The notes beneath the pieces were generated by a model that worked only from the letters and a program-made list of their open reading frames with translations, made no database searches and was not told where the DNA came from. 64,000 nt of DNA from Laetmonice hystrix (Eukaryota), in the NCBI GenBank assembly GCA_965235115.1, contig OZ249437.1, positions 34,596,001-34,660,000 on the forward strand. Reading direction: 5' to 3'. Made by a program: the position numbers and the translations under genes. This document shows, one piece after another, positions 3,791 through 62,887 of the stretch (its first letter is position 1; the number at the start of each line of letters is the position of its first letter).

Positions 3791-4014
3791 TGAATGTGGA
3801 ATGCGTTTGATGTTTGTATCTGGTAAAACAACGGCAAGACAACCATTGGCAATACTTTGGTTAAAACAGTAGTCTCTACAGTTCACTTAGCCGAATGTTA
3901 TGGAGTATTAATTATGTAAATTTATCTAGAACCATCTTTACTTTTTTTTCTCAGTCGTCGCCTCGGCCATGCGCCTCTCTCTAGCGCCTGAAAAGTAAAC
4001 CTTGTTCCAGAAAT

Positions 4015-4111
4015 ATGGCGGCAATAGGCCTATATCCTGTTGCCAGACCTTCATATGTTTATGTCGCGGTGCTGATCGCCACAATATTGGTCCTATGTGA
4101 CGCCATACCAG
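4015..4111 (+). CDS. First coding exon: signal peptide [32 protein letters not shown]
   Basis: ATG 4015 just after the acceptor cttgttccag (4010); hydrophobic core [14 protein letters not shown]; phase-1 donor G|gtgggt fits the phase-1 exon at 4496. Confidence 0.8.
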
Positions 4112-31100: not shown

Positions 31101-34100
31101 TAGTCTAAGGCCTTATCTAACCTAACAGCCTATGTCTGTATTTTGGAGTCATTGAAATGAGAGATAGTCGGTGATTGCTTTAGATCTTGACAAACTACAA
31201 TTTTGTCCTGGAAAACTCCTGGAATCTGTTGCAGACTACCTCGCGGTTTACAATGTCGAGAAAAGTGGTCCTGCCACTATTTTCGCTGACGTTCAAGTCA
31301 CCTTGGACTTCCAAATCACGGTAACGAACGAGGGGAACACACCTTTACTGGGCTGTCGTCCGCCCGTCCACGCCATGCAACCATTCGTAGCCCTCTCAGC
31401 CTCCGACTCGTATGAACCATCACTGGATACACGACTCCCTGTGACAAACATGTCGCTCGGTATAAACATAATGAAGTCTCTAAACTTTGGCCTGAAGTGG
31501 AAGGAATTATCATGGGCCTTTATTCAATTAGTACCATACGGAAATACAATTATGCCAACTTATCCATTTGTACAATGCATGTAATGGCTACAATTGAATT
31601 GCAAATTGTATTTAAAGATTGATTGATTGTATTTCTTATCATCTTAAAGTGCATTGTTGTACCTATAGACCTATATCTGATGTTCGAAATCTCACTTAAT
31701 AAGTAAAACAGTGCGAACATTGTGATTTCCTACCAGAGTTGTCGTCCTTACTGAGCCGTTCCCTTCACCCTGGCGTGAAACGTGACCTGCTTGGCGTTCA
31801 GGTGACCTTCACCTTGCCCCCACATGAGTGTGACGGCGCTAACTACCTCATAGTTGGCGTTCTGGCGTCGGGCTGGTGTCAGCAGTCGTCTGAGCTTACA
31901 ATGACCAATAACTACCGAGCGTTATCGCTCGCTCGCAAATGTCGCGGTAAGTAAACTGCTTTGAGAGAGATGGAGGGAGAATACCAATCAACCGGCAACC
32001 AATGAATCAACCCACCTTCCCTCCAGGATATAGAGCAATAAATGTAGCTGTCAATACGCTAGCAGAAGTCTTTGGTTTGATAAATGCACAATGTTGTGAC
32101 AAAAACAGAATTTTACTTCTTCGCATTCAGATCGAACAAAGTTCTACAAAGAGTGAAAATGCAGATATAGTCATCTTTGTGCTTGCTTTGTTTACATTAC
32201 GAAATTTCAAGAAACACTGAAACCAAATATATGATAATTAGGATCTCTTCGCACAGTTGAGGATTCCGTCGACATTCGACCTGCTATTAAACCGGACTCA
32301 GTAACGTTAGGTTATACGGAGGGTTACCTCAATGTCAGCTTTTCGTACGCAATCCACGGCTCCGGCAGTTCTATCCTAACGGGAATAGGTAATGGCTTTT
32401 CACTGATATAAGTTTTAATATAGTTAGGTTGAGGCCCCTACCAAATAAAAATATATCCTTTCATGTATTGTAATCTTGTAGTCAGCATTCTAATCCGCAT
32501 TACAAAGTTATGTGTACTACAGTATATGCATCATTTGAGAGCAATAAGCATCCCACCGTATACGATAAGTAGGCGCCACATTCTTGATTGACCTTTTATT
32601 GGTGATTTGTCGGATATAATGGAGTCCGGATGGTTAGCTCGGAGGATTGAACAACGCAGTGCTCAGTGACGCACCAAAACTGTTCGGCCCCACTGACTGG
32701 CTGACTGACAACGATTTCTTTTTATTTCGATCAGATCACAGTTTCTGGCTGTCCTCCGACCCCATCCTTGATGTGGACAGTGACGATTTGCTGCAGGTCG
32801 AACTTGATGACGGGTTTCTGACCTATGACCTCTCCTCCCCTCCCACCTACATGCCAGTGACCGCCTACATCCACGCTACCATCTATTCCCCCAAACATTG
32901 CGGGAACATCTATTTACTGGCCCAGATCGACCCCTTGGGTCTCATAACGGAGACAGACGAAACGAATAACGTATTCTCAGTTGGTATCTTTCAAAGTGGC
33001 GCCAATTCTACTTGTGGGCTACTGGGCTTTCCTGAAGGTAAGTGGGGTTTATATGGGCTTTCAACTCATGCTTCCCGGAAGTTAGTTTCATTCTGAAAAA
33101 ATATTCCCATGCAGTCGCATTTGTGCCCCATTGATAAAGAAATAAAGTAAAGATGGCTTTTCGTTGGGTTATGTTTTCTTGCTGTAGCCCTATGAGTGAA
33201 TACTAATACAACTTCTAACATACCAAAACAACATAAAACCGATTCTGTCATGTTCCAGATTTGTTTTCTCTTGGTGTATCGTTGCTGTACGTATCCCCTG
33301 AGAAACCCCCGGTCGGGTCTCCCATAACGTTCTCACTGGATTTACAAGCGAATTGTGAGCTGCACGATCCAAGTACTTGCCCAGGTCCAGTCATCCCCCA
33401 AACATCCTTCCACAATCATATCAAATTCATACTCAAGGTAAGCCTAAGAAAATATCATTTTGAATTTATCCCACCAAAATGAGAAGTGTGGAGAATAACT
33501 GCTTGGTAGCATTTTCTGACTAGACTGTAAAGGGATGTATAATCAATGAAAACTCCACAGAACATATTTGTTTTTCAGTTGGTTGACGTCAACTTTGATG
33601 ACATTGGAAACACGAATCTGATGACTATCGACGCTTACAGGAAGTCGGGACTACTCCCTCAAAATGCCTTAAGATGTGATTTCTCTGTAAACACCGGTTA
33701 GTTTAGCCCCACCTCCCCCCACCGCCGAATTTGTAAGATGACATTTCGGAACACACACAGTGTACCAAGCAGGTGTAACAGATTTCAAGGATACAAGTCC
33801 GATGGACCTGCAATCTCAGAAATATAGGTCCGATCGACGGACATAGGGCTTGAAGTCCGTGATGTTGTATGTTATCAATGTATCTTTATACTACTAACAC
33901 TAATCCTAACCTTAACCCTAATCCATGTATTTTCTTAATTCTATTATACGACTTACGTCTTTCATACGCCTACTCCGGCGGAGTTGCGTTTGTTTCACAC
34001 CTGCACAAGGAGTCCCTAACAAAGCTGGCCGCTTGACCTTCCTTGAATTCACTTACAGAATGCCGTATGAATTTGACTGAGAACTTTGTGGTGAGTGACC

Positions 34101-37100: not shown

Positions 37101-40100
37101 TGTAATATCGAAAAGCAAACATCTAAGCCACCGGATCCTGGGGGGTTCACGGGGTTCGAACTCCCCTTGGTAACATTTTTTCTATTTTATCCCATAAAAC
37201 ATTCTTAATTGACCATGCTGATCCCTCTCTCCTTTAGCAAATTCTACCCGTGAACCCCCCCCCCCTCCCTTTATCAAAATCCTGGCAGAACAGGCCCATC
37301 CACTACTGCCGCCCCTTTAAACAACCTATAACCAATTAGTAACCGAAATTCTTCAATTTCAGCTAATGTCCAGATTAAGGATCCTTCCCAGTGTACACTC
37401 GCCAAGGCGTCGGATGCCAGTCCTATGTTCTTCGTGAAAGCCAACATAGATTCAAACTTTTCAACCGCAGCATGTAACGATTACTACGGCATACCGATCG
37501 ACAAAAGTGACCTTAACTGCAAGTATGGTACGTACAAATATTCTTGTCTTACCAAAGTTCCAATGCCATCGCAAATCACTTTTATCTTTGAATTGAACGA
37601 ATCACAGTTTTAATTCAGAGCGTTGGCTTAGTGTTTTGCTCGATGACTTGCAGATGTCGTGGATTTGTGTGTGGAGGAATTCGACGTCAGTAGAGACGGT
37701 GTATTTGAATCCATGATCGCGGGGGATGAATACACCTATGCGTTAACGGTGCAGGTCATTCGAACGCCGCTGGGTCAGTATTCTCAGCCTAGAATATAAA
37801 ATTACTACTAAAACCATATTAAAGTTTACGTTGCGGTTGGATGGAGTTGGATCATTATGCAAAACGAAATTTACGAAAAGAAATTACATTTAAAGGAGAT
37901 ATTCCCGAAGGAGGCTCGGCGATTCTGACTGAGTTCTACATAAGTTATGACGATGTCTACAGCATCGATGACGTAGTGATATGGGTGCCACCGATACAAA
38001 ACCAACTGACGGGAGACGGCTCCTCCCAGGCGACAAGTTACAACGTTAAATTCGGCGCCAAGGGGCTGACTGTTGACATTGACAATAACCCAGAGCTGCA
38101 ATTCTTCTGTGGATTAATGTACATCATCGCTGTTATAGAAGATAAAGTCACCTATCCACCAAATGATCCAAACATAAATAACAATCATAAAAGCCTTAGA
38201 CTCCGTCTGAATTGTGAGGGCGATACGCTAGGAGTGGAACATTTCAGCATGCGGTTGTCTTCTCCTCAACAGTTGTACATCCACACGGGTGTCGACTTGT
38301 GGTTCGATCTCTCCGCTGTGGTGTGGAACTATTTGCTGCAGGGCATACCCGCTGCTGACGATGGCCGGCCACACATGCGATTTCTCTTGTATCTCTCGGC
38401 AGACAGCGAGCTGGACGTGGACACGGACTCTCCCGTCGATATCCTCGACCCCGGACCTCTGGCGGACACAAGAACCCGGGCCCTCAAGGCTAACTCGTCC
38501 ATCACTTTGAGCGGGAAAGTTTTGCTGCACCTTCCGTTTTCAGCGTGCACGTCGCGTTACATGCTACTCGTAGTGGAGCAACGTGTTCACGTTTCGGAGT
38601 ATGACAAAATCATACGGAATAATTACCGTTATTTATACCTATCAAACATTCGCTGTTCTCTTGTGTATGTTGACTGGATCGTCAAAACATTCGAAGTTTT
38701 ACAAGTTGATTCCACGGCATACTCCTTCAGGCTGGAGATTGTCTTTCGAAAAAAGAACTTCATCGGACCATTTGGAAGCCCTCCTGAACCGCTCGTTGAC
38801 TTCAAATTTTACATTTCTCGGGACAGTGTGTTTGATGTCGGGGATTGGGCGGTAGATTTTGATTGGGAAGATCACCAGGGAATACTGCAGCAAGTTTTAG
38901 AAGATGATGAGCACGTACTGATACTTGACAACTCGACCCAGTGGATACAGATAGCAGAGACTTTCCCACGCTCGTACTGCGGTTTGGTGTACATGATCGT
39001 GCACGTAGATAGTTCGAGTCGTGCCATGGAACTCTTGGAGACTAACAACTTCGCCGCTGCCCGAATACTTATTCCCTGTGGTCAAGGTATAATGGTGTAT
39101 TTTTTATTATTACACTTACATAATGTACAGGAGAAGTCGTTTAAACGACTCCCAGTTATATGGAAATTACGTCATATGTGAAACCTCCGTAATATGTGAA
39201 AGAAATCAACGTCCTATGTAAAAATCAACGTCAAATGTAAAAACAAGTGCAATGGCATGTCTAACCTACCTGACGGCTAACCCCATATTAGACAACAAAG
39301 TATTCAAAACGGCAGTTGAGATAAGTGACAGAATTGCTTTCCAGATGTACTCCAGTTGGCAGGACTCCAAGTTCAGACAACGCCTGTACTCCGACGTTCA
39401 CCCTCTACGATTCACCTCAACTTCATGGTTGCCAATGTACGGAACGCACCCATCCAACCTTATGGAACCGCCTCCCTCTTTTTCCTAAAGGTTAGGGGAA
39501 AATGGTCATTTCTATGAATATGGTTGGGTCAAGGGTGGAATACGCCTATCAATTTATAGCAAAGAATCGGAATTTGGAAATCCAATCCCAATGAGGAAAA
39601 CGGTTTGCGGGAAATGTTTCATCTATAGGATTTAGGGTGGGGGTGGGGGGGGGGGACATATACTTACAGTTCATATATATGGCATCGGTTAATGGCTGAA
39701 ATTTAATGATGCATTTTAATAAAAGGGCGAAGATATCCTCCCGGATGTGACACCCCATTCAAAACATCACCTAAGTCATAGTTCACAAACTCTGCTGTAC
39801 CGTCATTTCTTTAGGATGCACCACTCGCTTTTGTCGCATACACGACAGATGCCATTAATCTTAGTATTAAGACTCCGAACATTTTAGAAAATGTGGTTGA
39901 TGCCAAAAAAACACTATGAACGGTAAATACTGTTTGGTTACAGGTGTACGCCAGGACGCCCGGTTGGCAGAACGAGCATGACGTCACACCCCTAGAGTGG
40001 ACGTCAGGTCAAGCCGGCTTACAGACCAATAGTCTGGGTCCATACGGCAACGTCACTTTCACCGAGTAAGTAAACAAACATTTTATTGAAAATCTGGTAA

Positions 40101-43100: not shown

Positions 43101-46100
43101 AATAAAAACAATATAGATATTACAGCAATGTGTTTTTGAAGTGGTAGGTTATCGCACGTCTGCTGTTTGTTGTACAGATATTTCCAGTAGATTTTCTTGT
43201 AGCTTTGTGACACAAAATACTACACACATGAAAAAATGACGGGGTGAATTAATTCCGTTGGCGTAAAATATTTCATAGTCGAGACAATGTTTGAAGCATA
43301 TAACTTGGTGGCATTTCAGAGGATGTAGACGAGTGTGCCGAGGGTCTAGCTGAAACTTGTCATCCTGACTCCGAATGTATAAACCGAGTCACCAATCTGC
43401 AGAGTGCCCAGCGACAGGCCGTACAGTACGAATGTCAGTGTAAGGACGGGTTTACCGGTGACGGTACCGCCTGTACTGGTAAGCCGAGTTGGTTTGTGAA
43501 ACGGAAGTAGTTGGAAATAATTATTTGGAAAAATTGTTAGGGTTCTTGTTAGGCCTACATACATTGTAGACCGAAACAACATCTTTTACGACATTTCACT
43601 TTGATTCTACCTTGTGGCCCTCGCGAGACGCGAGAGCATGTGAGATACGGTTCGGCGCGTTCGGGTCAATTCAGCGTTTGGTTTCGTGAGGGTCAGACGT
43701 GGGTGACCACTGCTCTGTACACTCAACGAGTGGCTGACATTACACTCGTCCCTCAAACACATGCTATCCTGCGGGGGTAGACTTTGTGTGCAACAGTTCA
43801 GGTATCCTGTTGCGAGGGAAAATGTCCTAGTTAGAGAACTGGACATGAGTCAAACGGGTGGCTGGCTTAGCACTCGTCTCTCAAACACATGCTACTTTCG
43901 AGAATGGGGTAGACGTTGTGTGCAACAGGATAGAGATCCTGTTGCGAGAGAAAAAATGTCTTGATCAGTGAGTGATCAGGGACATGACTCAAACGGGTGG
44001 CTGGCAGAGCACTCGTCTCTCAAACACATGCTACCTTCGAGAATGGGGTAGACGTTGTGTGCAACAGGATAGAGATCCTGTTGCGAGAGAAAAATGTCTT
44101 GATCGGGGATCAGGGACATGACTCAAACGGGTGGCTGGCAGAGCACTCGTCTCTCAAACACATGCTACCTTCGAGAATGGGGTAGACGTTGTGTGCAGCA
44201 GGATAGAGATCCTGTTGCGAGAGTAAATGTCGGGACCATTTATACAAACTCTGCATGAGTAAATACCCTGTTTGAGTAAATACGGTATGAGTGAATCTGG
44301 CCAATAATTTAACCACATAGACAGTGGGAGCAAAGACCTAGTGAGGGTTGCAAGTTGAATTCAGGGCTGGAAGTAAAGGCTGTGATAACAATAGGCTTGA
44401 GTGCACGCCTGAGTGGGCCCGGTGAATGGTCAGCGGTGGCAGTCTCAGGTGCTACCGGTGCGGGGCGTATATGGCCCCTGCCTGTGTGTGGACGTGCTGG
44501 GCCTTGCTGTGGTCAAGGTCGGTTGCCAGGGGCGACGGCAAGGCTCGGAGAACCAACAGGTGCATACATGTCCGCATTGGTCAGTCACGGCTAGACTGCC
44601 ACTGGTTAGACTTTTTGCGAATTTGGCCATTATGTATTTAAGATACCAGCCAGGAAGCAGAAGTTTGGGTGTGACAGGGTTCACAGACTCCCGATAATTC
44701 CTGGAAAATAGAAAATACGTTTTCCAGTTCTGGAAATTCCTGGAAAAGTCCAGACAAATAATAAAAAGCTCTAGTTTGTAAAAATGGAGCCTAATTTCCT
44801 GTAGGCATTAATCATGCCACTTAAACGCTTTGCGACTGGATGTCGCAGTTTATCATTAAAATAACTTACTCCTAAAAAGGGGGAAAAGTAACAAGAATTA
44901 CTTTTGAGTCATGGGACAATGCAATTGTACCCAGGGAAAAACTCCAGGATTTTCTAGCCGACTAACTTTACAGATAGCCTTGTTACTGAGGTTCAGATTG
45001 CCATTGTCAAAGACTCAGAAGAGTGAGTGTGACAGGAAGGAGGCCAGCGATAGGCGAGAAGCATCTTAGGCTGGGACAGACGCATCACTGTTGGCCTTCC
45101 TCGGTAAGGCGACCGCGTCAGTTGAGAGTTTGACTGCCAAACTGTCTGCCAAGTTAGTTAACCTGGGTCAGTTTTCGAGTCAATGAATGAAAGGATCACC
45201 AGCAGACAGGATATGATGGATCCTTGCTAACCAAGTCAGTAGAATGATGCTACAGGAGACGTAGTAGAGAATTATGCAGATGATAATGGCTTTTATGAGG
45301 AGGTGCCCCGCAACACATCATTGCTGGCCGCGGTAAAGATGACAAGAGTTCTCCATGTCCAGAAACAATAGCCAGTTTCAGTATTCAGGGTCCAGGTCAG
45401 GGAATCTGGATTTCACTGATGGCGCAGTTGGTAGGGGACGCCCCGTGGGTCCTGACGCGCTGGAGGACATTATGCAAGGTGCTGCAAAACGCACTCAACT
45501 ACAGCTGGTGTAGCAATCCACTGAAAGCTAAAAAAGCGGACGAACATGCGGGTTCGTGCCTTGTCCGGGTAACGTGCCCCATCTCAGTGTCCCTAGGCCG
45601 AGCAAGATTGTGTTGGATGCTTTGTCGATAACTCGGAAGACATCGGACGTCAATCTGCAGAAGCAGCAAGAGACGTTAGAGGTAGCTATCTCGGCCGTGT
45701 GCACGGATGTGTGGGACCTGACGAACGTTGACAATATTAATGAGAAGACGACTCGTCACCTGAAGACTATGACGGACGTCGTCATGTCGGTTCACATGTG
45801 GCACGTAAATACATGTATCTGAGTGCCTGGCGTCGGCATGTGTTCGATCTGTGCATGATCCAATATGTGTCAGGAGGAAAGATCAATCTGGCCGTACATC
45901 TAGTCAGGAGATAGTCACAAAGGAATATGTAGTTTGTCGAAGAAAGAGCCCCAAAGGAGTACAATATTAGTTTGTCGAAGAAAGGGCTAGTCGACAAGAA
46001 AGTGGCCTGTTTGGGAATAAAGCCGTTGTCGAGAAGTGCATGAAATCTTAAGATGATTTCATTTCCAACATCCTTTTGTTACCGGGAAGAAGATGGCTTA

Positions 46101-49100
46101 CATAGGTTGATTTTACATGTGTCTTGATTTAAGGAGTTGTGAATACATACATTTTAACATGGCGTCGCGGCAGCAGGCTCTTGAGGTGTTGAGAGAAGAA
46201 GTGTGGCTAGGCTCCATAGATCTCTCTAAAGCTTATTACACCATCTCTTTGTTGACTGCCAATACGAACCGGTTAAAGTTTAGTGTGTGAGACAGACTGG
46301 TGTACAAGTTTAACTTAAAGTTCGACCTTTCAGGCTATCCTCTTATCCGAGAATGGTTAGTGAAGTGTTGGTGCCAAATCTTCGCCTCTGCGAGGGAGAG
46401 TGGTGTTATTTGCTTAGACTTTAATCGACGATTCCCTTAATTGCCGCAAGCAGAGGAGGGAAGTGTGCAAAGTTCCTGCGGTTTTGCGTCAGTGGGTAGA
46501 AGTCTATACTGAAGCCAACAACGGATCAGATTGATCCAGTATTGATTCAGTAAAAAGGACGGACAATGAATTACTGAAAGTGTTAAAACTTATAACAGGT
46601 AGAGAACAGGGACAGCTTGACGGTGCGTCAGCTGGCGCAGTTGATTGGGGGTAATGGTAGACCTAATAAAAGGTTTAGATTATAGTAAGGCTCCCTACAC
46701 AAGACTGGAAATGCCTAACATTGCTTGGCGGATACGTTGAGGGCACAGTGTGCCTTACACCATTAACGATGGAAGACGTGCTGTGGTGGAAGGTCCGTGT
46801 AGTTCATGGTGAACGTAGAATTCGGCTTTCCGTACCAGAACTGAAGTTAAGAAGCGCATCCCAATTAAATGTGCTTGAATAATGCGCAATGTAGTAAAGT
46901 TTCAGACCGTTTATTGATGGCAACCGAAACATATACATTAAGATTCTGGGAGACAATACAACAGCAGTCGCCTAAATAATAACATCGGAGGAACTAAATC
47001 AGATTGTAATGAGTTGGCAATGTTAATTTGGGACTGGTGTCAGAATAAAAGTATTTGAATCACGAGCACATTCCGGGCTCTAAGAACACTTAAGTAGACT
47101 TTCAGAGTCGACTTTTTACTGAAAATACCAAGTGGATGCTTCCCGGGGACAAATTTTTGAAGCCATTTGTTGTGGGTTCAGAAAGGCCAAAATAGACCTT
47201 TTGGCATCCAGATTAAATAGAAGTTAAAGTAACATGTCAGTTTGGCGTCCAGACCGGGGGCTTCTAGAATGGTGTTTTCATTTTAAGTGGTGTGATTGGG
47301 TTATTTATGCCTTTCACCCTGATGTCCAAGACGTTAGACCCTACAAAATTCACAAAGAATAGTACCCAAAACGATCTTGATAGCTCCGAACAGGCGGGGC
47401 CACGCCTTCTTCAAACAGGCAAAATGCAGCAGCGGATGCACTGTGGGCACTAAAGAAGAGAAATAATATCTCGTTCAGACCTGTTCCAGAAAAGAACGGA
47501 AATAGTTAACAGTAGGTCTGTCTGATGGTGTGTCCTTTCTTGAAGAAAGCCTAGGAACATCTCATCGGAGGAAAGTGGTGAATATTATGTGGAGGTCTTG
47601 GAGATTCAACATTAGGAAGCCGTGTGCTGGTCATTTAGATAAATGTAGGTGGTTAAGGTTTTGTAGAAGTAAGGAGGAGGATCCACGAACAGGAAGCGTG
47701 GAGTCATTGTTAAAATGTGTGTCCACATTGTGTAAAGAAAGACTCAAATACAGTGGTATTAATAGTCAGGAGTGCTTTATCAGAAGGTACAATGGCCACA
47801 TGGAACTACTATGAGGACTACTAACTGAAATAGGTCGGTTCATGAAGGGATACTACGACGAGAACCGGTTTCCCATATCAAAGTACGAGAAAGCCTCGGA
47901 CGTCAACCTGGTTTTTTCAAACGTTTTTTGGAGTGGCCAAAGAATCGGAAAAGTCTTATTTAGGAATTTCACTCTTAAGGTACCCGTATTAATTTTGCTA
48001 GCCCGGGTAACGGGTCAGCGTGGTCAGGCGTTATGATTACCAGATATTATTAATAAGCATTTAGATTCAGGGGATCCTGACCTTTTCAAGATGAGAATCT
48101 TGTGTGAACATAATAGACACGGGATTACGTTTGACACGATGGAGATTACCTCAAGTCTTTTTACACATAAACTAAGTTATTCCCTGTGGTTGGGTTACGG
48201 GAATATGTAAATCCACAGAACCTCGTGCACTACGAGGGAACACAATTTTGTTGTGTCATTTATTCCTCTTCACCGGAGGGTGTCCAGGGATACCTTTTCG
48301 CCCTGGTTAAAAAGTGATGAGTCAGGTCTTTGGGGTGTACAAGAGCCGCAGTACGTTAGCCCCTCAACTTCCAAGGTACTGTCATAAAGGTGCCTGTGGA
48401 GATCTTTTGAAGAGGGCGTCGTGGACAGCTTAGGAAAGTTTGCGAAACATTAACAAGCTAATTGTCAACAGAGCAGTTTCATTAGGTCACAGATGGTTGC
48501 AAAATGCACATCACTGTGCGTGAAAACACCCGAGGAAGGTGACTTTTTTTTCTTGCTTGGCAAGGCCTGCAAGGAAACCCGCTTTAAAATCTCACATGCT
48601 CTCGCGTCTCGCGAGGGCCACAAGGTAGAATTTTAAATTAAACGAACTTACCAAGTGAAGTTTGATGTTAATTCTACCGTTGGTCCTTCGCGAGACGTGG
48701 AGAGCATGTCCCACCACTCCCCACCCAGTGTGCTACGTAATAGGAAAGTATCGGGGAGGTATACGTGTGGTAGGGGGTGTTATTGGGGGGTTTCCTTGCA
48801 GTACCTTTAAACGATTGACCCGAACGCGCCGAACCGTATCTCACATGCTCTCCACGTCTCGCGAAGGACCAACGGTAGAATTAACATCAAACTTCACTTG
48901 GTAAGTTCGTTTAATTTAAAATTATATCATTCATGTTGATGTAAGCCAAAAGAAATAGTCCAAATTATATTAACAAAATTTACTTAGACTGTCATATAGG
49001 CCTATACTACACTCCGCTCATTTTTGGAAATACAGGGTTCCTTCCTGTTTATTAGTTGTTTACTCCCCCCCCCCCTTCCATATCAACCCATTAACTAGTT

Positions 49101-52100
49101 TGAATCATTTTACTCATCTTTTGTTTTTGCTATTTTGTAGATATAGATGAATGCGCTGGGTCATCGTATCAATGTAGGAACTACATTGGTACAAGCTGTG
49201 TAAATACCGACGGCTCGTATGTGTGTCAGTGTGGCGAGGGTTATATGTTCGTCATGAATGAGGACCTATCTACCCTGGACGTATGTCAAGGTATGCAGCG
49301 AATGTTAGCTGTAATATATACGAGGAAGTCATTACTTTATTAGTGGATGTTGAAGACGACATGAGGTCGAGATAATATGCCCGAGGTGTAGCCGAGACCA
49401 CACTGCATTATAACTTCGTCAAAACCCTTGCGCCGTTACGCCAAAGTCTCATAATTATGCACACTATAGTAACTCTAAACAATGATGAGTGCTACCTTTG
49501 TCCATGTGTCAGACATTGGTGAGTGCTACCTTTGTCCGTGTATCAGACATTGATGAGTGCTACCTTTGTCCGTGTATTATAATTGATGAGTGCTACCTTT
49601 GTCCACGTATTAGACATTGATGAGTGCTACCTTTGTCCCTGTATCAGACATTGATGAGTGCTACCTTTGTCCGTGTATTATAATTGATGAGTGCTACCTT
49701 TGTCCACGTATTAGACATTGATCAGTGCTACCTTTGTCCACGTATTAGACATTGATGAGTGCTACCTTTGTCCGTGTATCAGACATTGATGAGTGCTACC
49801 TTTGTCCATTTGTCAAACATTGATGAGTGCTACCTTTGTCCCTGTATCAGACATTGATGAGTGCTACCTTTGTCCATGTGTCAGACATTGGTGAGTGCTA
49901 CCTTTGTCCCTGTATCAGACATTGATGAGTGCTACCTTTGTCCATGTATTAGACATTGATGAGTGCTACCTTTGTCCGTGTATCAGACATTGATGAGTGT
50001 TACCTTTGTCCGTGTATCAGACATTGATGAGTGCTACCTTTGTCCGTGTATCAGACATTGATGAGTGCTACCTTTGTCCGTGTATCAAACATTGATGAGT
50101 GCTACCTTTGTCCGTGTATCAGACATTGATGAGTGATACCTTTGTCCGTGTATCAGACATTGATGAGTGCTACCTTTGTCCGTGTATCAGACATTGATGA
50201 GTGCCAGGAAGGGAGCAGCCTCTGTTCACCAGATGCCGACTGTGTGAATACAGTTGGTCGCTATAACTGTACCTGTCGGCCCGGCTTCACAGGGGACGGT
50301 TTCAACTGTACAGGTAACTTTTTTATTCACCAGTCCGCAGTTCTGAAAACTCTCCATAAGAACGACCAATGCCTCCTAAAACCAAGGCGGTGAAAAAGAG
50401 CGAAGTTAAGGGTCGGATTATAATGTGATTATATTTTCGCATATTTTCGATTAATAAAATGTGTTAGTGTGACCTGAAAACATAGAGTAAAGTTTGATAA
50501 CGACAGTTTAATAATTGTATGCCCTCAGATATCAACGAGTGTGACGCCCAGGACTGTAGCGGGTTTGGTACCTGTGAAAACCGGGTGAACGGCTTCACAT
50601 GTCACTGTCCCAGTAATAGGTCGGGGGAGACATGCGAGAAAGGTGACTAAAATTATGGCTAGCTTCATAGGGAAACTTTATAGATAGAGGTACTTTCTTA
50701 TTAAAAATAGTAAATCAGGGTTTTATATAGGGTTTTATCCGATGACTAAGATTTAACTCGAGAAAATACTGACTAATGAAATATAGGCCAAATCCCATTT
50801 CAGTGGAGGAAATAGAAACGATACCTTTGTTTTCGGTGCTTTCGCAAGCGGTGTGATGTCGTGGAAAATAATTGTTGTTTCACGTTTTCTGTGAATGTTA
50901 CAGAACGTGCCCTTCTGTCGATTTATTTACTTTTTGAATGTATTTTTCTCTCTCCTTTTTTTTGCAGTTGACGGAGGATGGAGTGAGTGGAGTGCGTGGG
51001 GTGATTGTCTGGCAGAGTGTGGGGAGGGGGTCCGCCGCCAGACAAGGACCTGTACGGACCCGGCCCCAGAGAACGGCGGTCAGTATTGTCCGTGGGACGG
51101 CGGACAGCGGACGGCGACAGAGTGGCGGGCCACGGTGGCCGCCGTACAGCACGACCCGACCCCGTGCCATGTCCGAGACTGTGAGGATGGTAGGTGGAAC
51201 TCTAGATATGGGAGTTGGAGGGAGTTGGAGGGAGGGAGTTGGAGGCAGAGGAAGGGAGGCAGTTATGGGCACATGTTCAGAATTGACAAATGGGTGGATG
51301 GATGGGGCAATCTAAAGTGGAACAAGACGAGAAACTGTATTTTATAACAGGAAAGTGGCTTCAAAGAAGGCGCATTGACGAGCCAATACACATGTTCTCT
51401 TCTTGAAGAAACTGCCTTGGTCTCTCCTTCAAGAAGGGCATTATAATGTGCATCATGTGAGGCCTAGCTAGCCCAGCCTGCGCCTGCGTAAGATGTTTCC
51501 CAGGTCATACCCAGTGGTGTAAGATGTTTTCTTCCCAGGTCATACCCAGTGGTGTAAGATGTTTTCTTCCCAGGTCATACCCAATGGTGTAAGATGTTTT
51601 CTTCCCAGGTCATACCCAGTGGTGTATGATGTTTTCTTCCCAGGTCATACCCAATGGTGTAAGATGTTTTCTTCCCAGGTCATACCCAGTGGTGTATGAT
51701 GTTTTCTTCCCAGGTCATACCCAATGGTGTAAGATGTTTTCTTCCCAGGTCATACCCAGTGGTGTATGATGTTTTCCCAGGTCATACCCAGTGGTGTAAA
51801 ATGTTTTCTTCCTAGGTCATACCCAGTGGTGTAAGATGTTTTCTTGTCCGAAGAACATGGGAGCGACATGTATGTATGTTAACATGGGTCATAATTACAC
51901 GATCATCTGCGACGCCAACTACAGAAGTTTACCTACAAGGGACGGCCTCGGTATACGTTGTGAAGGTAAATTGACTGGTCTGACCAGGGGAGTTGATATC
52001 AAGGGGGGGGGGGGGCAAGGCGGCTGCGGTGGGGGAGAAACTTTATTAAATTGAAATCGGCATTTTTTATGTCCCTCACTGCTTAAAATAGTTTACACCT

Positions 52101-58100: not shown

Positions 58101-61100
58101 ACCAGCAAATTTCGGGTCCATTTTCCATAATTATAAACTAAATTATATTATTGAAGGACTATTTCAACTCAACAGACGGGGCAGTATCATGGCAGGATAG
58201 CATGATTTGTTAAACTTAAAGTGCCACTCATTTCAACTGGATGAATTTGATCAATTTTCGATCCTGTACGACCTACTCGAAGTTGCGCAATCACAAACTG
58301 TTTACTTTGGTGGTTTGAGCAAAGTTCCACATGGAGCGCTGTAGTTGCACGCTTAGTATGGAAGATTTCCGGGTGGGGCGCATCCATCGCATCAACGACT
58401 GTCAGTCGGGAGTCGGCTCGGTGTGTGCGGGGGGCACACACCTAGTCTTAGCGCCATAAAACTGGTCAGTCTCTGCGACTGACCCAGTTTCCTTGGTGTG
58501 TGGCCGGCTTTAGACTTGAGAATGAAGATTCAATACATACTAGATAGCTTCAGTTGAACTAGCCTATATGAAACCCAATTACAGGTAGGAATCCCCCTTT
58601 TCTTAAATACTTTGTTCACTCCAAAACAATTGTAAATTAGATGAATTATTCCACTGTTTTTGTTTAAAGGTGAACTACGTACCTACTACGGCCCCACGTA
58701 CGCCGATTTCTACACGCTCTTTTTTAAGTACGCGTACCCGAGCTCGGCCAACGAATACTTTTATGACGCGATCTTATTGACTTGTGACCAGCCGTGTATG
58801 TGGACCGAGCTCGCTGAGGACATCTGCCAGTTGCCCCTTGGGGTCGTGTCCATAAGGTGTCTATGTGAGCTCGCTTTTACCGGAAACGTAACTTGGGCGC
58901 TAGAAACTCTCGACCGAGAGAGGACTGACTTACAACGGAACACGCATTGTTGTAAGTTTTTGTTCTGAACAATCATAATTATGGGAAATGGATTTTTGTA
59001 AGACAAGGTAAGCCAAATATTTTATGTCACTAAGAGAACCGTCTTCATTCATACTCGTAAAACAGCGGTGTTGACGATTTGGCGACTTGGGGGGGGGGGG
59101 GGGTCAAAGGCGGTGTAACTATGTACCTGGTCATCAACTTTGGTAATTTAGATATCATAATCAATTTAGATATCACGATTTTACAATGTTCATCATCGCT
59201 TGACGTCATGTGAATTACCCTATATAGCCTACATGACGTTTAATAGCCTACATATTGCCGGTGCGAGTGACTGGGAAGTTCTTGTCTTTTCCAGTGAATT
59301 CCCCCAAATTCGACCAAATTACTCCACATCGGATGGAAGCGAGGGTGAACTCGGAGAGACTGGTCACTCTGCGTGCTCGAGATCGCTACGAGCCACGTGG
59401 TATTGTGACGTTTTACGTCCTCATCCACACCCGTTCGGAGACCGGTGACGTCACGACACACCAACTGAATCTGACCGCGACACGGTCGACAGGAGACTGG
59501 TTCCAAGTTCAGGTTCGGCTGGAGATCCAGGACGGAGTCGCAGGCGTGGAACTGTGGGCTGTGAATGAAGCAGGGGCCAAGGCTGTTCGTTTCCTTGAAG
59601 TGGTGATTTGTCATTGCGCCGAAGAAAGTTCCTGCTACTACAGCTATAGACAGCAGGGAACGGTGAGATATCGCTATTATAACTAGGCTATACATGGGAG
59701 GAGGAGATATAGATTATAATGTCACAAAGAGATTGGAGGCTGTGTCAACATCACCCCCCCCCCCCCTATATATATAATATGAGATTTCCAAGAGCTTCAG
59801 TTTCTCTTAGTTTTTCATTTAAAGGCCCCGATACACAGACCGATTTACGGCCGATATTTTAATTTTTTTCTCCATAATTTTCCTATGAAAGGTCCGCCTC
59901 TGGCAGTCATGCATGAACTACCTGAATTGTGAAAAGACGTTCTACTGTACTGAATGATGTAGAAATGACCATGATGTTGGCAGGGACAGGACGGGTACGT
60001 CCGACACGCCGGTTGTCGATGTCCTGGAGGGATGGAGGGAGACGAATGTCGGACTGAGCGCGACGTTTGCCAGCAGAGACTCTGTCACGGAGGTCGGCAC
60101 CTACTGACTAAACTAAATGACATTAGGCCTACTAGTCTCCAGACCCGATATAATACTATAACCCTAACCGTAGCTATAAAAACCTATAGAGTTGCATTCA
60201 TTCGAAAAGTGTAAAAAGTGTAAGCAAGTGTAAACATTGGCCGATTGAAGTGTACGATTTACCTATAATCGCGGTCCGTTTCCGTAGCTTGTACTGACCG
60301 ACCTGGACATGAACTTGGTCTTGACGGTCGGGAATTCAGCTGTAAACCATGTTTGCCTCCATTGGTGGGAGACGGCACAATGTGTACTGGTGAGTCATTG
60401 GTAGCTTTCTCAGGGGCCGGTGGAGCCGATATTCCCTGCGTTGGTAAAGAAACGAGGAATATGTCTTCCTAGAAAAATCCCCACTTCATTATATTAATTT
60501 CATCCTGTACTGTTTGAGGTTCCCCAGGATTTAATTGTTACCTACATAGAGAAAGTCTGAGGAATGTTATTCAAAGCCCAGGCATTGATTGATGAAAACG
60601 TCTTGTTTTAATGGTACAGATGTGAACGAATGTGTGCTGGCCCCTGATGACGAGAACAGACATAGCTGTTCTCATGACTGTGTTAACAAAATGAACGGGT
60701 ACGAATGCAGAGCCAGGCCCGGCTACTGGCTTAGTTCTGATGGCCAGAACGTCGAAGGTTTGTTTCTCTAGCAACGAATATACATTAACCTTTTGGTGGT
60801 ACAATATTTATATTTTCTTTTAACACTAGTTGTACATTTGGTGACATTTTCGTACCATTGATTATAGGTGAAAGTAATAGTTTGGAAAAAGTTAATAGTT
60901 TAGAAGAAGTTAATCGTTTAGAAGAAGTTAATAGTTTATAGGAAGTTCATAGTTTAGAAGAAGTTCATAGTTTAGAAGTTCATAGTTACGAAGAAGTTCA
61001 TAGTTACGAAGAAGTTCAGAGTTACGAAGAAGTTCATAGTTATGAAGAAGTTCATAGTTACGAAGAAGTTCTTAGTTTAGAAGAAGTTCATAGTTTAGAA

Positions 61101-62887
61101 GAAGTTCATAGTTTAGAAGAAGTTCTTAGTTTAGAAGAAGTTCTTAGTTTAGAAGAAGTTAATAGTTTAGAAGAAGTTCATAGTTTAGAAGTTCATAGTT
61201 TAGAAGAAGTTCATAGTTTAGAAGAATTTCATAGTTTAGAAGTTCATAGTTTAGAAGAAGTTTTTAGTTTAGAAGAGGTTAATAGTTTTGAGGAAGTTCA
61301 TAGTTACTAAGAAGTTCATAGTTACGAAGAGGTGGTTGTGTTTCAGACCGGCCGGAATGTGTTATACCCCTGTTGAATGGTTGCGATCAGTCGACCGCGA
61401 CCTGTGCCGAGACGGAAGGTGGTTTCAGTTGTGTTTGTCACCCTGGCTATACGGCCGGTGGAGGCAACACTTGTGTTGGTAAGACACTTCAAAACTAAAA
61501 TAAACTTAGATAGGATCAATGCCGGTTTTCTTTTAAATCAAAGCCTTAAACATAAGCAAGAATATAAGTTTGAGAGAGCCAGGCCCGTGTATTCTACCAT
61601 GAAAGAAGGCGAGGCCAGCTTCAAGCCTGGAGCGAGCGGCGGCCAGGTAAAGTTTTCCGCAGGCCTGATGTAGGTTGAACATTCTATCCGTATTAATTAT
61701 ATCATTTTTAATCCCATATTTCAGATGTCGATGAATGTCAAACTGACAATGGCGGTTGTCATCAGTATTGTGAGAACACGGTAGGAAGTTTCCATTGCTG
61801 CTGTGCTCCCGGCTACCAGCTAGATTCCAAAAACAGCTTGCAATGTGTCCGTAAGTATAACCTCAAATATAGCGGGGAAAACTTTGATTTGCTTTCCTAT
61901 TTCTTCCTAAATGACGACTGGAGTTTTGGGATGTTATAACAGGAGTATGAGGTATGATATATACCTTTTGATATATACCTTTGTATATATATGTAATACA
62001 GTAAATCCTTTAAGCCTCCAATATGAAACGCCTTCGATTGAAGAAAACCTCCATACAAATTAAAACGCATATTTCCAGTTCGGTTTTACAATGACAGTCA
62101 GAACCCTCCCGTTAAGGAATAGCTCTATAAGGAACTTTTCAGTCCGTAAAAGTGCTCCCTTTTAGAGAACATATAGTGATAATTATTATAGGCCTAATGC
62201 ATTTTTACATATTCCAGCTTATGACAGAATCAAGACTCCACATCGATGTGGGCCCTTCGAGTGTAACCAGACTAATGACATTTACTGGTGTAGATGTGAG
62301 AAGGGTTACAACCCTCCACCAGACATTCTCAACGTGTTCCCTTGTGAAGGCAAGTATTGTCCTCCAACATTCATAGCATGTAAAACTTTGGTTCGATTTC
62401 GTACACTGACCGTGCTGTTATTACGACCCAAGAGCAGTGATTTTGTATACAATCTGTAGGGATATTATATTATATTTATAATACTGATTGATTTCTAATA
62501 CTTCTCCAGTAATTGCCACTGGGGTTGCTAGTGACCCGGAGATATGTTCGTACGGACAGGGCGGTATCTATGAGTGCAGGTGTAGGCCAGGCCACAGACC
62601 CAGTCTCAATATGACGTTCGTCTGTGAGGGTAAGTATAGGAGAGTCAAACATAGAGTATGTCATGTAACACCACTCATGTTGGCCAGTCTATAATAATAT
62701 GAGTGTTTGCTAAACACATGTAAACAACACTGGATACATGTCACCCGTACAGATGAGGACGAGTGTAGTCCGGCGTCACGTTCGTACGCCAACTGTAGCC
62801 ATACGTGTGTCAACACTCCCGGGTCGTATCGCTGTGAATGTCAGTTGGGATTCAAGGCAGACCCAGCTAACCCGGCCCGATGTCTTG
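4015..62887 (+). CDS. Giant multi-exon secreted/cell-surface protein (~6,360 aa, 106 exons): signal peptide - ~33 CARDB-like repeats - EGFx4 - TSP1 - EGFx3 - NIDO - AMOP - VWD - linker - EGFx7+ (MUC4/SUSD2-like C-terminal module); 3' end unresolved
   Basis: Manual splicing at AG/GT (two GC donors) gives one open frame. Summed exon length is 19,072 nt (3n+1), matching the phase-1 donor at 62887. Recognisable motifs: DETNN-type repeat ends, DIDEC EGF starts, WSEWSAW TSP1, IAPLWAD and NTFQ NIDO, CLRWY and [30 protein letters not shown]. Confidence 0.9.
4496..9258 (+). CDS. CARDB-like repeats 1-5
   Basis: Exons 4496-4756, 5021-5212, 5529-5728, 5827-5971, 6350-6424, 6605-6808, 6969-7223 (GC donor), 7610-7810, 8212-8397, 8706-8934, 9089-9258. 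Motifs such as [38 protein letters not shown]...C. Confidence 0.8.
9369..17932 (+). CDS. CARDB-like repeats 6-10
   Basis: Exons 9369-9611, 9929-10096, 10210-10286, 10737-10932, 11355-11507, 11900-11997, 12734-12902, 14308-14469, 14890-15123, 15615-15788, 16699-16776, 17105-17271, 17507-17670, 17838-17932; phases are compatible throughout. Confidence 0.75.
12160..12725. repeat. 51-bp intronic minisatellite, ~11 copies
   Basis: Unit ATTACTTTACAATGTGTTTATTATGATGTACTGTTTTACA(A/T)TAATTACGGG; ends immediately before the acceptor of exon 12734. Confidence 0.95.
13318..14370 (+). repeat. 95-bp tandem repeat x11 made of an intron 3' end plus the first ~60 nt of exon 14308
   Basis: Copies start at 13318, 13413, 13508, 13609, 13704, 13799, 13894, 13989, 14084, 14179, 14274. 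Only the last continues into the rest of the exon. Confidence 0.95.
15990..16640. repeat. 30-bp intronic minisatellite, ~22 copies
   Basis: Unit GTGAGTGAATTGATGGTTGTTGTACGCCCA; accounts for the four long spurious ORFs between 15893 and 16814. Confidence 0.95.
18281..23537 (+). CDS. CARDB-like repeats 11-15
   Basis: Exons 18281-18363, 18728-18895, 19025-19166, 19326-19468, 19616-19729, 19970-20126, 20263-20409, 20587-20751, 21049-21210 ([15 protein letters not shown]), 21487-21732, 22167-22337, 22444-22643, 22852-22972, 23412-23537. Confidence 0.78.
18348..18467 (+). repeat. 30-bp tandem repeat x4 spanning the donor of exon 18281
   Basis: Unit CAATCTAACATTGAGG|GTAAGACATAACTA; potential donors after 18363, 18393, 18423, 18453. 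Confidence 0.95.
22966..23235. repeat. 26-bp minisatellite, ~10 copies, starting at the donor of exon 22852-22972
   Basis: Unit CAGTACTTCTGTACAAAATTGTATAA. Confidence 0.9.
23741..29821 (+). CDS. CARDB-like repeats 16-20
   Basis: Exons 23741-23950, 24197-24400, 24984-25177, 25424-25586, 25951-26022 ([19 protein letters not shown]), 26267-26460, 26868-27069, 27594-27680, 27983-28189, 28513-28782, 29006-29286, 29686-29821. Confidence 0.8.
24485..24605. repeat. 21-bp tandem repeat (~6 copies) within a probable intronic insertion (~24405-24900)
   Basis: Unit CATTTCTCTTCTGCGCCGGCC with variants; the TTTCTCTTC motif recurs nearby in both orientations. Confidence 0.8.
28427..28486. mobile_element. 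Tiny hairpin/MITE-like element (CAG...CTG ends)
   Basis: CAGGGGCGGATCCAG ... CTGGATCCGCCACTG inverted repeat; a related GCATCCAGGATTT + poly-G remnant lies near 15178. Confidence 0.5.
30048..37527 (+). CDS. CARDB-like repeats 21-27
   Basis: Exons 30048-30338, 30486-30608, 31235-31459, 31737-31946, 32257-32388, 32735-33037 ([15 protein letters not shown]), 33259-33437, 33579-33696, 34059-34241, 34500-34679, 35004-35240, 35426-35623, 35759-35912, 36165-36265, 36610-36879, 37363-37527. Confidence 0.8.
30720..30860. repeat. (CT)/(CTGT) microsatellite
   Basis: Direct reading of the sequence. Confidence 0.9.
37654..42962 (+). CDS. CARDB-like repeats 28-33, including the single 1,191-nt exon 37896-39086
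   Basis: Exons 37654-37773, 37896-39086, 39345-39490, 39944-40065, 40585-40793, 41052-41147, 41360-41686 ([15 protein letters not shown]), 42157-42401, 42779-42962. The 446-aa ORF 37841-39181 shows three consecutive repeats ([26 protein letters not shown]; [20 protein letters not shown]). Confidence 0.85.
41750..41830. repeat. (AG)n-rich microsatellite
   Basis: Direct reading of the sequence. Confidence 0.9.
43320..50642 (+). CDS. Four calcium-binding-type EGF exons
   Basis: 43320-43478 (DVDECAEG...[14 protein letters not shown]), 49141-49290 (DIDECAGSS), 50191-50313 ([12 protein letters not shown]), 50529-50642 ([10 protein letters not shown]); all phase 1-1. Confidence 0.9.
43604..48923 (+). 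mobile_element. DIRS1-like tyrosine-recombinase retrotransposon, full-length termini, ORFs decayed
   Basis: Non-identical ITRs (43607-43670 and ~48814-48881) plus a right extension. ICR 48589-48709 is the reverse complement of both termini joined at AAT; ATT flanks both ends. Remnants: gag-like ([17 protein letters not shown], ~45640), RT ([14 protein letters not shown], ~46200), RNase H (DNTTAVA*INNIGGT, ~46950), methyltransferase-like (IDLLASRLN, ~47190), YR ([20 protein letters not shown], ~47975). Confidence 0.92.
43742..44230. repeat. ~130-bp tandem repeat x4 inside the DIRS 5' region
   Basis: Recurrent CACTCGTCTCTCAAACACATGCTAC...GGGGTAGACGTTGTGTGCAACAGGATAGAGATCCTGTTGCGAGAG...GACATGACTCAAACGGGTGGCTGG. 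Confidence 0.9.
49485..50204 (+). repeat. 34-bp tandem repeat, ~21 copies, made of the acceptor plus first 14 nt (DIDEC) of EGF exon 50191
   Basis: Unit CTTTGTCCGTGTATCAG|ACATTGATGAGTGCTAC. Confidence 0.95.
50968..51189 (+). CDS. Thrombospondin type-1 (TSP1) exon
   Basis: [41 protein letters not shown]...PCHVRDC; phase 1-1. Confidence 0.92.
51488..51845 (+). repeat. 35-bp tandem repeat, ~10 copies, made of the acceptor plus 5' end of EGF exon 51816
   Basis: Unit TTTTCTTCCCAG|GTCATACCCAGTGGTGTAAGATG. Confidence 0.93.
51816..52709 (+). CDS. Three EGF-like exons
   Basis: 51816-51965 ([18 protein letters not shown]...GIRCE, 5 Cys), 52214-52345 (DIDECMETG), 52581-52709 ([17 protein letters not shown]). 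Confidence 0.85.
53136..54834 (+). CDS. NIDO domain exons (last exon runs into the start of AMOP)
   Basis: 53136-53278 ([10 protein letters not shown]), 53592-53768 (ISENGVI...IAPLWAD), 53922-54074 (IWYQVY...LKVTWSEM), 54210-54310 (NTFQALVV), 54573-54834 (GGLPARSGF...[11 protein letters not shown]). Confidence 0.88.
55076..55823 (+). CDS. AMOP domain exons
   Basis: 55076-55214 ([15 protein letters not shown]), 55337-55446 ([12 protein letters not shown]), 55691-55823 ([10 protein letters not shown]...[10 protein letters not shown]); an alternative in-frame acceptor at 55673 is possible. Confidence 0.82.
56107..58951 (+). CDS. von Willebrand factor type D (VWD) domain and following Cys-containing region
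   Basis: 56107-56281 ([22 protein letters not shown]), 56521-56675 (AVAAQ), 57432-57665 ([15 protein letters not shown]), 58670-58951. Confidence 0.82.
56875..57305. mobile_element. Foldback/MITE-like element with multimeric inverted subterminal motifs
   Basis: Left arm repeats GTCAA(A/T)GTGTCCG (~6x); right arm repeats its reverse complement CGGACAC(T/A)TTGAC (~7x); GC-rich spacer. Confidence 0.75.
57700..58510. mobile_element. 811-bp non-autonomous DNA transposon (MITE) with perfect TIRs
   Basis: AAGCCGGCCACACACCAAGGAAACTGGGTCA at 57700 and its exact reverse complement ending at 58510; TA on both flanks; no transposase ORF seen. Confidence 0.85.
59295..62887 (+). CDS. Beta-rich linker and C-terminal EGF-like array
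   Basis: 59295-59662, 59984-60092, 60288-60389, 60620-60757, 61347-61478, 61725-61850, 62218-62349 (GC donor), 62510-62629, 62753-62887. Confidence 0.85.
60890..61330. repeat. 15-18-bp intronic minisatellite (~25 units)
   Basis: Unit AGAAGAAGTTCATAGTTT with variants; ends just before the acceptor of exon 61347. Confidence 0.9.

Follow-up and report, generated by a model that had tools for sequence, protein, structure and literature searches.

What kind of protein carries the membrane-proximal domains of the mucin MUC4 behind thousands of residues of folded repeats, and is it the product of one gene? This question is raised by a stretch of 64,000 nucleotides from Laetmonice hystrix (assembly GCA_965235115.1, contig OZ249437.1, positions 34,596,001 to 34,660,000 of the forward strand), referred to as the window in the following. 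A first-pass annotation made from its letters alone had proposed a giant protein in which a series of CARDB-like repeats precedes EGF, thrombospondin type 1 (TSP1), NIDO, AMOP and VWD domains. Proteins that combine NIDO, AMOP and VWD, like MUC4, SUSD2 and Mesh, are important at epithelial surfaces and the cassette itself is poorly understood. From the analysis of the window, which has no N runs, and of the complete assembly (627 Mb, 35 contigs) we conclude that the stretch quite probably holds a single plus-strand gene that starts with the ATG at 4015 and whose product is a type I membrane glycoprotein with about 6,200-6,500 residues. Positions refer to the window, and those beyond 64,000 are window-equivalent coordinates of the downstream DNA.

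Gene model and reading frame

The exons were joined by a splice-aware chainer, which takes AG...GT candidates, scores them by codon log-odds and splice matrices and connects them by phase-compatible dynamic programming. With generic splice matrices the first chain on the plus strand comprised 108 exons and 6,594 amino acids (aa) without a stop; it began with an exon near 4047-4111, ended exactly at 62887 and included some exons inside intronic minisatellites or a transposon. After masking of these minisatellites and the transposon and retraining of the model, the plus strand gave 87 exons (5,354 aa) with a score of 638 and the minus strand, used as a control with the same retrained model, 19 exons with a score of 42, a control that is partly circular because the model had been trained on plus-strand exons. 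With the ATG and the downstream stop as anchors, models were then calculated for three exon penalties and resulted in 103, 106 and 113 exons (6,156-6,471 aa), with 103 exons common to all settings. The middle model places 94 exons and 5,721 aa within the window. Its donors match the consensus MAG/GTAAGT, its exons and introns have a median length of 165 nt and 321 nt, respectively, and 60 of its 104 internal exons are of phase 1-1. An in-frame stop at 3982-3984 precedes the ATG, and at its other end the gene extends about 8.6 kb past the end of the window, giving a total of about 69 kb and about 100-110 exons. The first-pass annotation had counted 106 exons and about 6,360 aa in one open plus-strand frame, which we could reproduce within about 10% (94-108 exons in the window), and a few of the exons counted there probably lie in intronic minisatellites. 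Between the AMOP-like and VWD domains the exon 56456-56675 of the predictor was overridden for the homology-supported exons 55673-55823, 56107-56281 and 56521-56675.

A long array of CARDB-type repeats

Over the 4,550 aa that precede the first EGF, a jackhmmer profile seeded with one repeat unit matched 24 repeats, 20 of which are strong. These repeats are separated by gaps of about one to three unit lengths and, as this spacing fits multiples of about 137 aa, the array should hold about 32-33 repeats in total. Applied to the raw open frames, the profile matched 43 pieces on the plus strand versus 4 on the minus strand, and two of the latter belong to a neighbouring paralogue (see below). An all-against-all BLASTP of the plus-strand open frames detected no repeat family and matched only intronic minisatellites, because the repeats within the gene are too diverged from each other.

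The consensus of the repeats reads DL...F......G..L.F...V.N.G......F.L.FYLS.D..LD..D...L..G......L.IP...CG.VYL.V.VD......E.NN....V.I.C, and the conserved positions of the profile are D1 (0.87), L2, D116, N121 (0.72), N122 (0.76), C102 and C132. The N-terminal D-L together with the C-terminal acidic-x-N-N before the last strand is what we take to be the CARDB signature, and the cysteine pair C102 and C132 would be an animal-specific addition to the CARDB-type sandwich. Pfam searches with single exons missed most of the repeats, the best PF07705 score being below the gathering cut-off of 22.7 (Table 1). Genome-wide, the five best CARDB matches are all located within this gene or its two paralogues.

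The largest exon of the gene encodes about three consecutive repeats, and an AlphaFold2 model of its 399 residues, calculated with 16 homologues, is all-beta with a mean pLDDT (predicted local distance difference test) of 81.9. When this model was searched against the AlphaFold DB clusters, the top matches were prokaryotic arrays, many of them named CARDB, with E values of 2e-14 to 1e-7. Among 48,161 PDB representatives the tied-best match was the CARDB domain 3IDU from Pyrococcus PF1109 (Z 7.9, root-mean-square deviation 3.5, 103 residues), and a Foldseek search of the PDB with the whole three-domain model gave only generic Ig-like arrays. From the profile and the model taken together we conclude that the repeats are, as predicted folds, sandwiches of the CARDB type to which a cysteine pair has been added. 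The earlier count of about 33 folded CARDB-like repeats is thereby upheld, with 24 found by the profile, the rest by spacing and the fold backed by the model and its matches to AlphaFold DB and 3IDU.

The array was also said to stand in place of the Pro/Thr/Ser (PTS) region of a mucin. The array consists of 8.2% Ser, 7.3% Thr and 5.2% Pro, and a mucin-like PTS region was not found anywhere in the protein, the maximum being 31% Ser, Thr and Pro together in any 100-aa segment. This part of the claim holds; the replacement is, however, not one-for-one, as the array is separated from NIDO by EGF and TSP1 modules.

Relatives in other animals

Searching 1.84 billion representatives exhaustively with the three-repeat exon, we obtained only 24 proteins. 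Those with a name are an 'unnamed protein product, partial' from Owenia fusiformis (CAH1772454.1), 'uncharacterized' or 'hypothetical' proteins from Branchiostoma (XP_078689460.1 and KAI8495792.1, carrying the same repeat family as the Owenia relative) and one bacterial repeat protein. With whole relatives as query Pfam CARDB scores above its cut-off (89.4 bits for P0003, 44.3 for P0011, 35.2 for P0017 and 26.2 for P0012). In Branchiostoma only the array was seen within the loci examined. All database relatives being uncharacterized, hypothetical or unnamed, we agree with the first-pass annotation that no named gene has this architecture, and in the literature searched we found no paper linking CARDB with NIDO or AMOP or with these animals.

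The relative P0003 is encoded on a Logan contig of SRR23372228 (L001 in the following; 23,696 nt, 34% GC, introns of about 60-270 nt), where an architecture of about 7,000 aa is laid out in six or seven large exons. This AT-rich, compact genome might be that of an annelid or of an orthonectid-like animal. An exon of 10.4 kb holds at least 20 repeats and three EGFs, upstream exons add more repeats, and the counterpart of EGF 1 is contiguous with the last repeat inside one exon. A phase-1 intron of 72 nt separates it from an exon encoding EGF-TSP1-EGF-EGF-NIDO-AMOP-like and the start of VWD. Across a further short intron VWD is continued and followed by at least 14 EGFs, a transmembrane (TM) helix and a tail. 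For a positional comparison the window protein was cut into 34 overlapping segments, 20 of which have their best L001 match on one diagonal. This diagonal holds nearly all strongly significant segments, with E values down to 1e-18, and along 4,500 residues its offset moves no further than from about 47 to about 176. As the repeats are positionally orthologous between the two animals, the array should have been about this long in their common ancestor, with the single units keeping their place.

In Owenia fusiformis the locus (GCA_903813345.2, CAIIXF020000001.1: 4028440-4069219) is annotated as a 2,180-aa 'partial' model with array, EGF and TSP1, followed by models of 134 aa and 476 aa. Within the 7 kb that follow the first of these models, on the same strand, we found exons that match the five NIDO, two of the AMOP-like and the three VWD exons of the window; they show the same order and exon partition and are located between and within the gene models. 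That annotation would be likely to fragment such a gene had been expected, and in Owenia the locus is indeed split into three models, a warning that automatic annotation breaks up genes of this kind.

From the array to the membrane

The order of the protein is signal peptide, array, four EGFs, TSP1, two to three EGFs, NIDO, AMOP-like domain, VWD, a region of about 250 aa, EGFs, TM helix and tail (Table 1). The domain order proposed before is confirmed overall, except that AMOP lies under the Pfam threshold and one EGF exon before NIDO (51816-51965) could not be confirmed. The TSP1 of the window aligns with the TSP1 of Owenia and L001.

For NIDO, exon 54210-54308 reaches 26.8 bits with PF06119 (cut-off 25) and the genome-wide scan also matches 54204-54305. 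All five NIDO exons are collinear with exons from Owenia (E 1e-5 to 3e-11) and with the NIDO of L001 (81.9 bits). Two of the VWD exons are matched by PF00094 with 12.7 bits (profile positions 2-48) and 22.4 bits (105-151), neither exon alone reaching the whole-protein cut-off of 22.9, and the VWD exons are collinear with those of Owenia, of both paralogues and of L001. The GDPH cleavage motif is absent at the start of VWD, where the window has GALH and L001 has G-M-S-H at the aligned position.

The AMOP-like domain needed a different approach. Pfam AMOP matches seven exons of the genome, all of them on another chromosome. We built a hidden Markov model (HMM) of the AMOP-like family from four members (window, both paralogues and L001) and searched 12,279 open-frame pieces with it. 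The first matches after its own members were exons of four Pfam-positive AMOP genes (E 0.0025-0.24), namely the N-terminal exon of one and the C-terminal exons of all four, each matched by the corresponding half of the family HMM. Motifs in common with AMOP are W..CPC..QA..D.RF, CCY..G.L and CC...C.LY..KRP, the window having SCVY for CCY, and the neighbours of the region in the ESM Atlas are AMOP clusters at 0.77-0.78, which we use as a lead only. By remote homology only, the region 55076-55823 would be a divergent AMOP-like domain; its exon 55673-55823 was placed by hand.

The three exons after VWD (58670-60092) belong to no Pfam family and exon 59984-60092 finds a weak match only in the third paralogue (E 0.0017), making this region the least certain part of the gene model. 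The EGF exons that follow continue in the downstream DNA with ten further ones from 64020 to 68387, so that the distal string consists of about 15-16 EGFs, mostly of the calcium-binding type. Exon 72212-72411 contains a hydrophobic segment of about 26 residues, judged by eye to be the TM segment, and the last exon 72584-72643 encodes RKRREDPDERCLEDDSIIE followed by the stop, a tail of 20 residues. The C-terminus of L001 ends alike with TM and tail. From the TM helix and the short tail we derive a type I membrane protein. The giant extracellular protein suggested before is seen in the layout of array and EGFs, but it is anchored in the membrane by a TM segment that lies beyond the window.

Weighing one gene against its alternatives

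Several points speak against a single gene with the architecture and role assigned here. The exon boundaries come from our own simple predictor, about 10% of the exons vary between its settings, and it mis-modelled the junction of AMOP and VWD until this was corrected by homology. Nine to thirteen of the repeats are counted from the spacing alone, and Pfam AMOP (PF03782) gives no match on the exons of the window even at E values up to 10. The two large exons after VWD (58670-58951 and 59295-59662) have no homologue in the paralogues or in L001, and in the first of them 5 of 7 differences between the haplotypes are non-synonymous. The annotation of Owenia splits the locus after TSP1. In searches of sequencing runs the locus was present only in DNA runs of one sample and in no RNA run, and run X4 (59 Mb of contigs), considered as a possible transcriptome, matches only high-copy intronic repeats. 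Finally, function, stiffness of the rod, metal binding and localisation are purely inferred.

The case for one polypeptide rests on the relatives in L001 and Owenia, from which we infer a single transcript across the whole locus. It could instead consist of two or more adjoining genes, a secreted array-EGF-TSP1 protein and a MUC4/SUSD2-type NIDO-AMOP-VWD-EGF-TM protein, joined only by an exon chaining that forces the frame, as dynamic programming always yields a frame-consistent path. The Owenia model that ends after TSP1 and the separate 134-aa and 476-aa models downstream of it are in line with this, as is the result of the RNA searches. However, the Owenia model is flagged 'partial', and in L001 TSP1 and NIDO lie within one uninterrupted open frame from which the array exon is only 72 nt away, with the phase-1 splice rebuilding the D-I-D-E-C start of an EGF. 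In the window the stretch 43478-53136 holds no stop-terminated exon, no second signal peptide and no gap in phase compatibility. Together this makes separate genes quite unlikely, and still less credible to us is a decaying or silent member of the three-member family, whose open frame would partly be an artefact of choosing exons that avoid stops. Such decay could be read from the existence of two paralogues, from the young transposon and the polymorphic repeats in the introns and from the mostly non-synonymous haplotype differences in the exons after VWD. Yet the 103 exons are stable across the predictor settings and the conserved cysteines and motifs are kept. Contigs of the second haplotype show 20 exonic differences in 55-61 kb, 10 of them synonymous and none introducing a stop; up to 56675 the AMOP-like and VWD exons have 9, with 7 of these synonymous, and all insertions and deletions are intronic.

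A different objection concerns the nature of the repeats, which might be generic Ig-like or E-set sandwiches merely resembling CARDB, the link to prokaryotes being convergent or too remote. The single-exon Pfam CARDB score just below the cut-off (22 versus 22.7), the generic matches in the PDB Foldseek search, for example to integrin and transglutaminase, and the middling Z of 7.9 to 3IDU, which is tied with an unrelated chain, would all agree with this. Set against them are the 89 bits to which P0003 sums on CARDB, the AlphaFold DB matches dominated by CARDB-annotated arrays at E values of 1e-14 to 1e-8, the DL start and the C-terminal acidic-NN signature in common with CARDB and a bacterial repeat protein found by sequence with an E value of 6e-8, and we consider a chance resemblance as improbable as the split into separate genes. 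Slightly more room has to be given to the idea that the same gene encodes a component of cell-cell junctions, like Drosophila Mesh in smooth septate junctions, and not an apical spacer. Mesh shares NIDO, an Ig-like E-set domain, AMOP, VWD and TM, and the NIDO-AMOP-VWD cassette occurs here in the same order. But Mesh has neither a long array nor an EGF string, and an ectodomain of about 200 nm would far exceed the cleft of a septate junction, and a junctional role is in our opinion unlikely as well.

A possible function at the apical surface

The array may form a stiff rod with a constant length of the order of 150 nm, to which the EGFs could add about 50 nm. The MUC4/Mesh-type cassette, being without self-cleavage, would hold this rod on the apical cell surface, where it might serve the glycocalyx, mucus or cuticle as a spacer, an adhesive or an anchor, with folded domains playing the role of the glycosylated mucin stalk. 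As the repeats are old and individually conserved, we favour a structural ruler over a variable recognition surface, and the acidic-NN motif together with the di-metal CARDB structure 3IDU suggests stiffening by metal ions. On this basis we tentatively propose an ancient bilaterian 'molecular ruler' family, present in annelids, amphioxus and the animal behind L001, in which a prokaryotic-type CARDB domain had reached about 33 copies before these lineages split, was fixed in number and order and, carried by a MUC4/Mesh-type anchor, sets the thickness of the apical matrix or the distance of attachment. It would be a folded-domain alternative to the mucin stalk and one that vertebrates and ecdysozoans are without; we regard this whole scenario as possible rather than probable.

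The family couples the NIDO-AMOP-VWD cassette to a long rod made from a domain family that is catalogued as prokaryotic, and it represents a case of a prokaryote-type adhesion domain being fixed in animals as a position-specific array of 33 units. A natural comparison between a glycan brush and a protein rod on the same anchor is offered by these proteins, and the three-repeat exon (37898-39094) provides a construct that is ready for use in studies of structure and calcium binding.

Paralogues, intronic elements and features of the window

Two paralogues are located on the same chromosome (C2), one of them head-to-head with the present gene. The head-to-head paralogue is encoded on the minus strand and reaches from window positions 1420-1976 upstream to about C2:34,549,000, with 27 minus-strand matches of the repeat profile over about 42 kb. 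Its cassette includes NIDO at C2:34552044, AMOP-like exons at about C2:34,550,000-34,551,100 and one VWD exon. With possibly less than 2 kb between their start codons, the two genes would seem to share a bidirectional promoter region; a search for the first exon of the paralogue yielded one candidate, the minus-strand ATG at 2289, which is not convincing. The third paralogue (C2:51,180,000-51,260,000, plus strand) shows matches of the repeat profile over about 80 kb, Pfam CARDB at 51231425 and 51233475, NIDO at 51256590 and AMOP-like and VWD exons, and its array may begin before the examined stretch.

The transposable element of 4.5 kb in the intron between EGF 1 and EGF 2 has at least ten near-full copies on seven chromosomes and must have been active recently, as these copies are 90-99% identical. 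It shows short internal inverted repeats (about 4227-4310 versus 4425-4501 of the query) and fragmented open frames, and an older copy with 71-78% identity is found near the head-to-head paralogue. The assignment to the DIRS elements made in the first-pass annotation could not be substantiated, the sole Pfam signal on its open frames being a 12-bit hint of RVT_1.

Long intronic minisatellites were found at 12159-12722, 13319-14369, 15993-16639, 49479-50204, 51497-51845 and 60877-61323 and also at 68.4-71.5 kb in the downstream DNA. They have periods of 51, 95, 30, 34, 35 and 18 nt and consist of 10-25 copies with 87-96% identity. Exon predictors are drawn to several of them, which have one or more open frames, and naive exon counts and protein lengths are probably too high on their account. 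The second haplotype (DNA runs X1 and X3) is without 449 bp at 56869-57317 and 823 bp at 57687-58509, both stretches being replaced by 11-12 other letters. They consist of intronic repeats with a contig depth in the thousands and are polymorphic repeat insertions confined to introns.

Table 1: Features of the gene and its introns in the window (bits refer to Pfam profile scores).
Feature	Position	Strand	Evidence or remark
First coding exon, ATG and signal-peptide-like hydrophobic segment	4015..4111	+	core ends ...LCDAIP; donor CAG/GTGGGT at 4111/4112
Array of ~33 CARDB-type beta-sandwich repeats, ~137 aa each, ~4,400-4,550 aa	4496..42962	+	~70 exons, mostly phase 1-1
Best direct Pfam CARDB exon	32735..33037	+	PF07705 21.9-22.0 bits at 32884-32979, cut-off 22.7
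Largest exon (1,199 nt), ~three consecutive repeats	37896..39094	+	best relatives 40% identity, E 7e-79
EGF 1, calcium-binding type	43320..43478	+	EGF_3 30.5 bits
Young transposable element	44400..48900		in 5.7-kb intron between EGF 1 and EGF 2
EGF 2	49141-49290	+	EGF_CA 38.3 bits
EGF 3	50191-50313	+	EGF_3 51.1 bits
EGF 4	50529-50642	+	EGF 28.3 bits
Thrombospondin type 1 repeat	50968..51189	+	TSP_1 23.5 bits (cut-off 21.6); TSP1_spondin 31.2 bits
Doubtful EGF-like exon	51816-51965	+	no Pfam match at 51818-51964
EGF-like exons before NIDO	52214-52345, 52581-52709	+	EGF_CA 40.6 bits, EGF 23.5 bits
NIDO, five exons	53136-53278, 53592-53768, 53922-54074, 54210-54310, 54573-54834	+	PF06119
Putative divergent AMOP-like domain, three exons	55076-55214, 55337-55446, 55673-55823	+	remote homology
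VWD, three exons	56107-56281, 56521-56675, 57432-57665	+	PF00094
Cysteine-bearing region after VWD, ~250 aa	58670-58951, 59295-59662, 59984-60092	+	long open frames, good coding scores
First five membrane-proximal EGF exons	60620..62887	+	Pfam EGF_CA, FXa_inhibition; matches at 60620, 61725, 62753

Comparison with known systems

MUC4 resembles the present protein in having a signal peptide, a very long N-terminal extension, NIDO, AMOP, VWD, EGFs, one TM helix and a short tail. The extension of MUC4 consists of glycosylated tandem repeats of Ser/Thr/Pro, whereas here it would be built from about 33 folded CARDB-type domains, and the present protein is therefore not a mucin in the strict sense. 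Unlike in MUC4, four EGFs, TSP1 and two to three EGFs are inserted before NIDO, the two to three EGFs of MUC4 stand against about 16 here, the GDPH of MUC4 is GALH and AMOP stays below the Pfam threshold. SUSD2 (AMOP-VWD) and Drosophila Mesh (NIDO-AMOP-VWD) share the membrane-proximal cassette and the type I membrane topology, but with about 800-1,400 aa and sushi/CCP ends they are without a repeat rod or EGF string. Both Mesh and SUSD2 carry GDPH.

The 'mucin4-like' proteins of the skeletal organic matrix of the coral Acropora combine TSP1 with NIDO, AMOP, VWD and EGF; they are considered to be transmembrane proteins (PMC4890752). No CARDB array has been reported for them, which sets them apart by their description, the published sequences being truncated at both ends (PMC4890752).

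Prokaryotic surface proteins with CARDB domains (PF07705), such as Pyrococcus PF1109 with the structure 3IDU, show the same fold and signature and likewise form tandem arrays at the surface. Their repeats measure about 100 aa compared to about 137 aa in the animal repeats, which differ further by the cysteine pair, by being spliced from phase-1 exons and by their fusion to EGF, TSP1, NIDO and VWD. L001 has the same domain order and the same repeat positions as the present gene, but encodes them in six or seven large exons.

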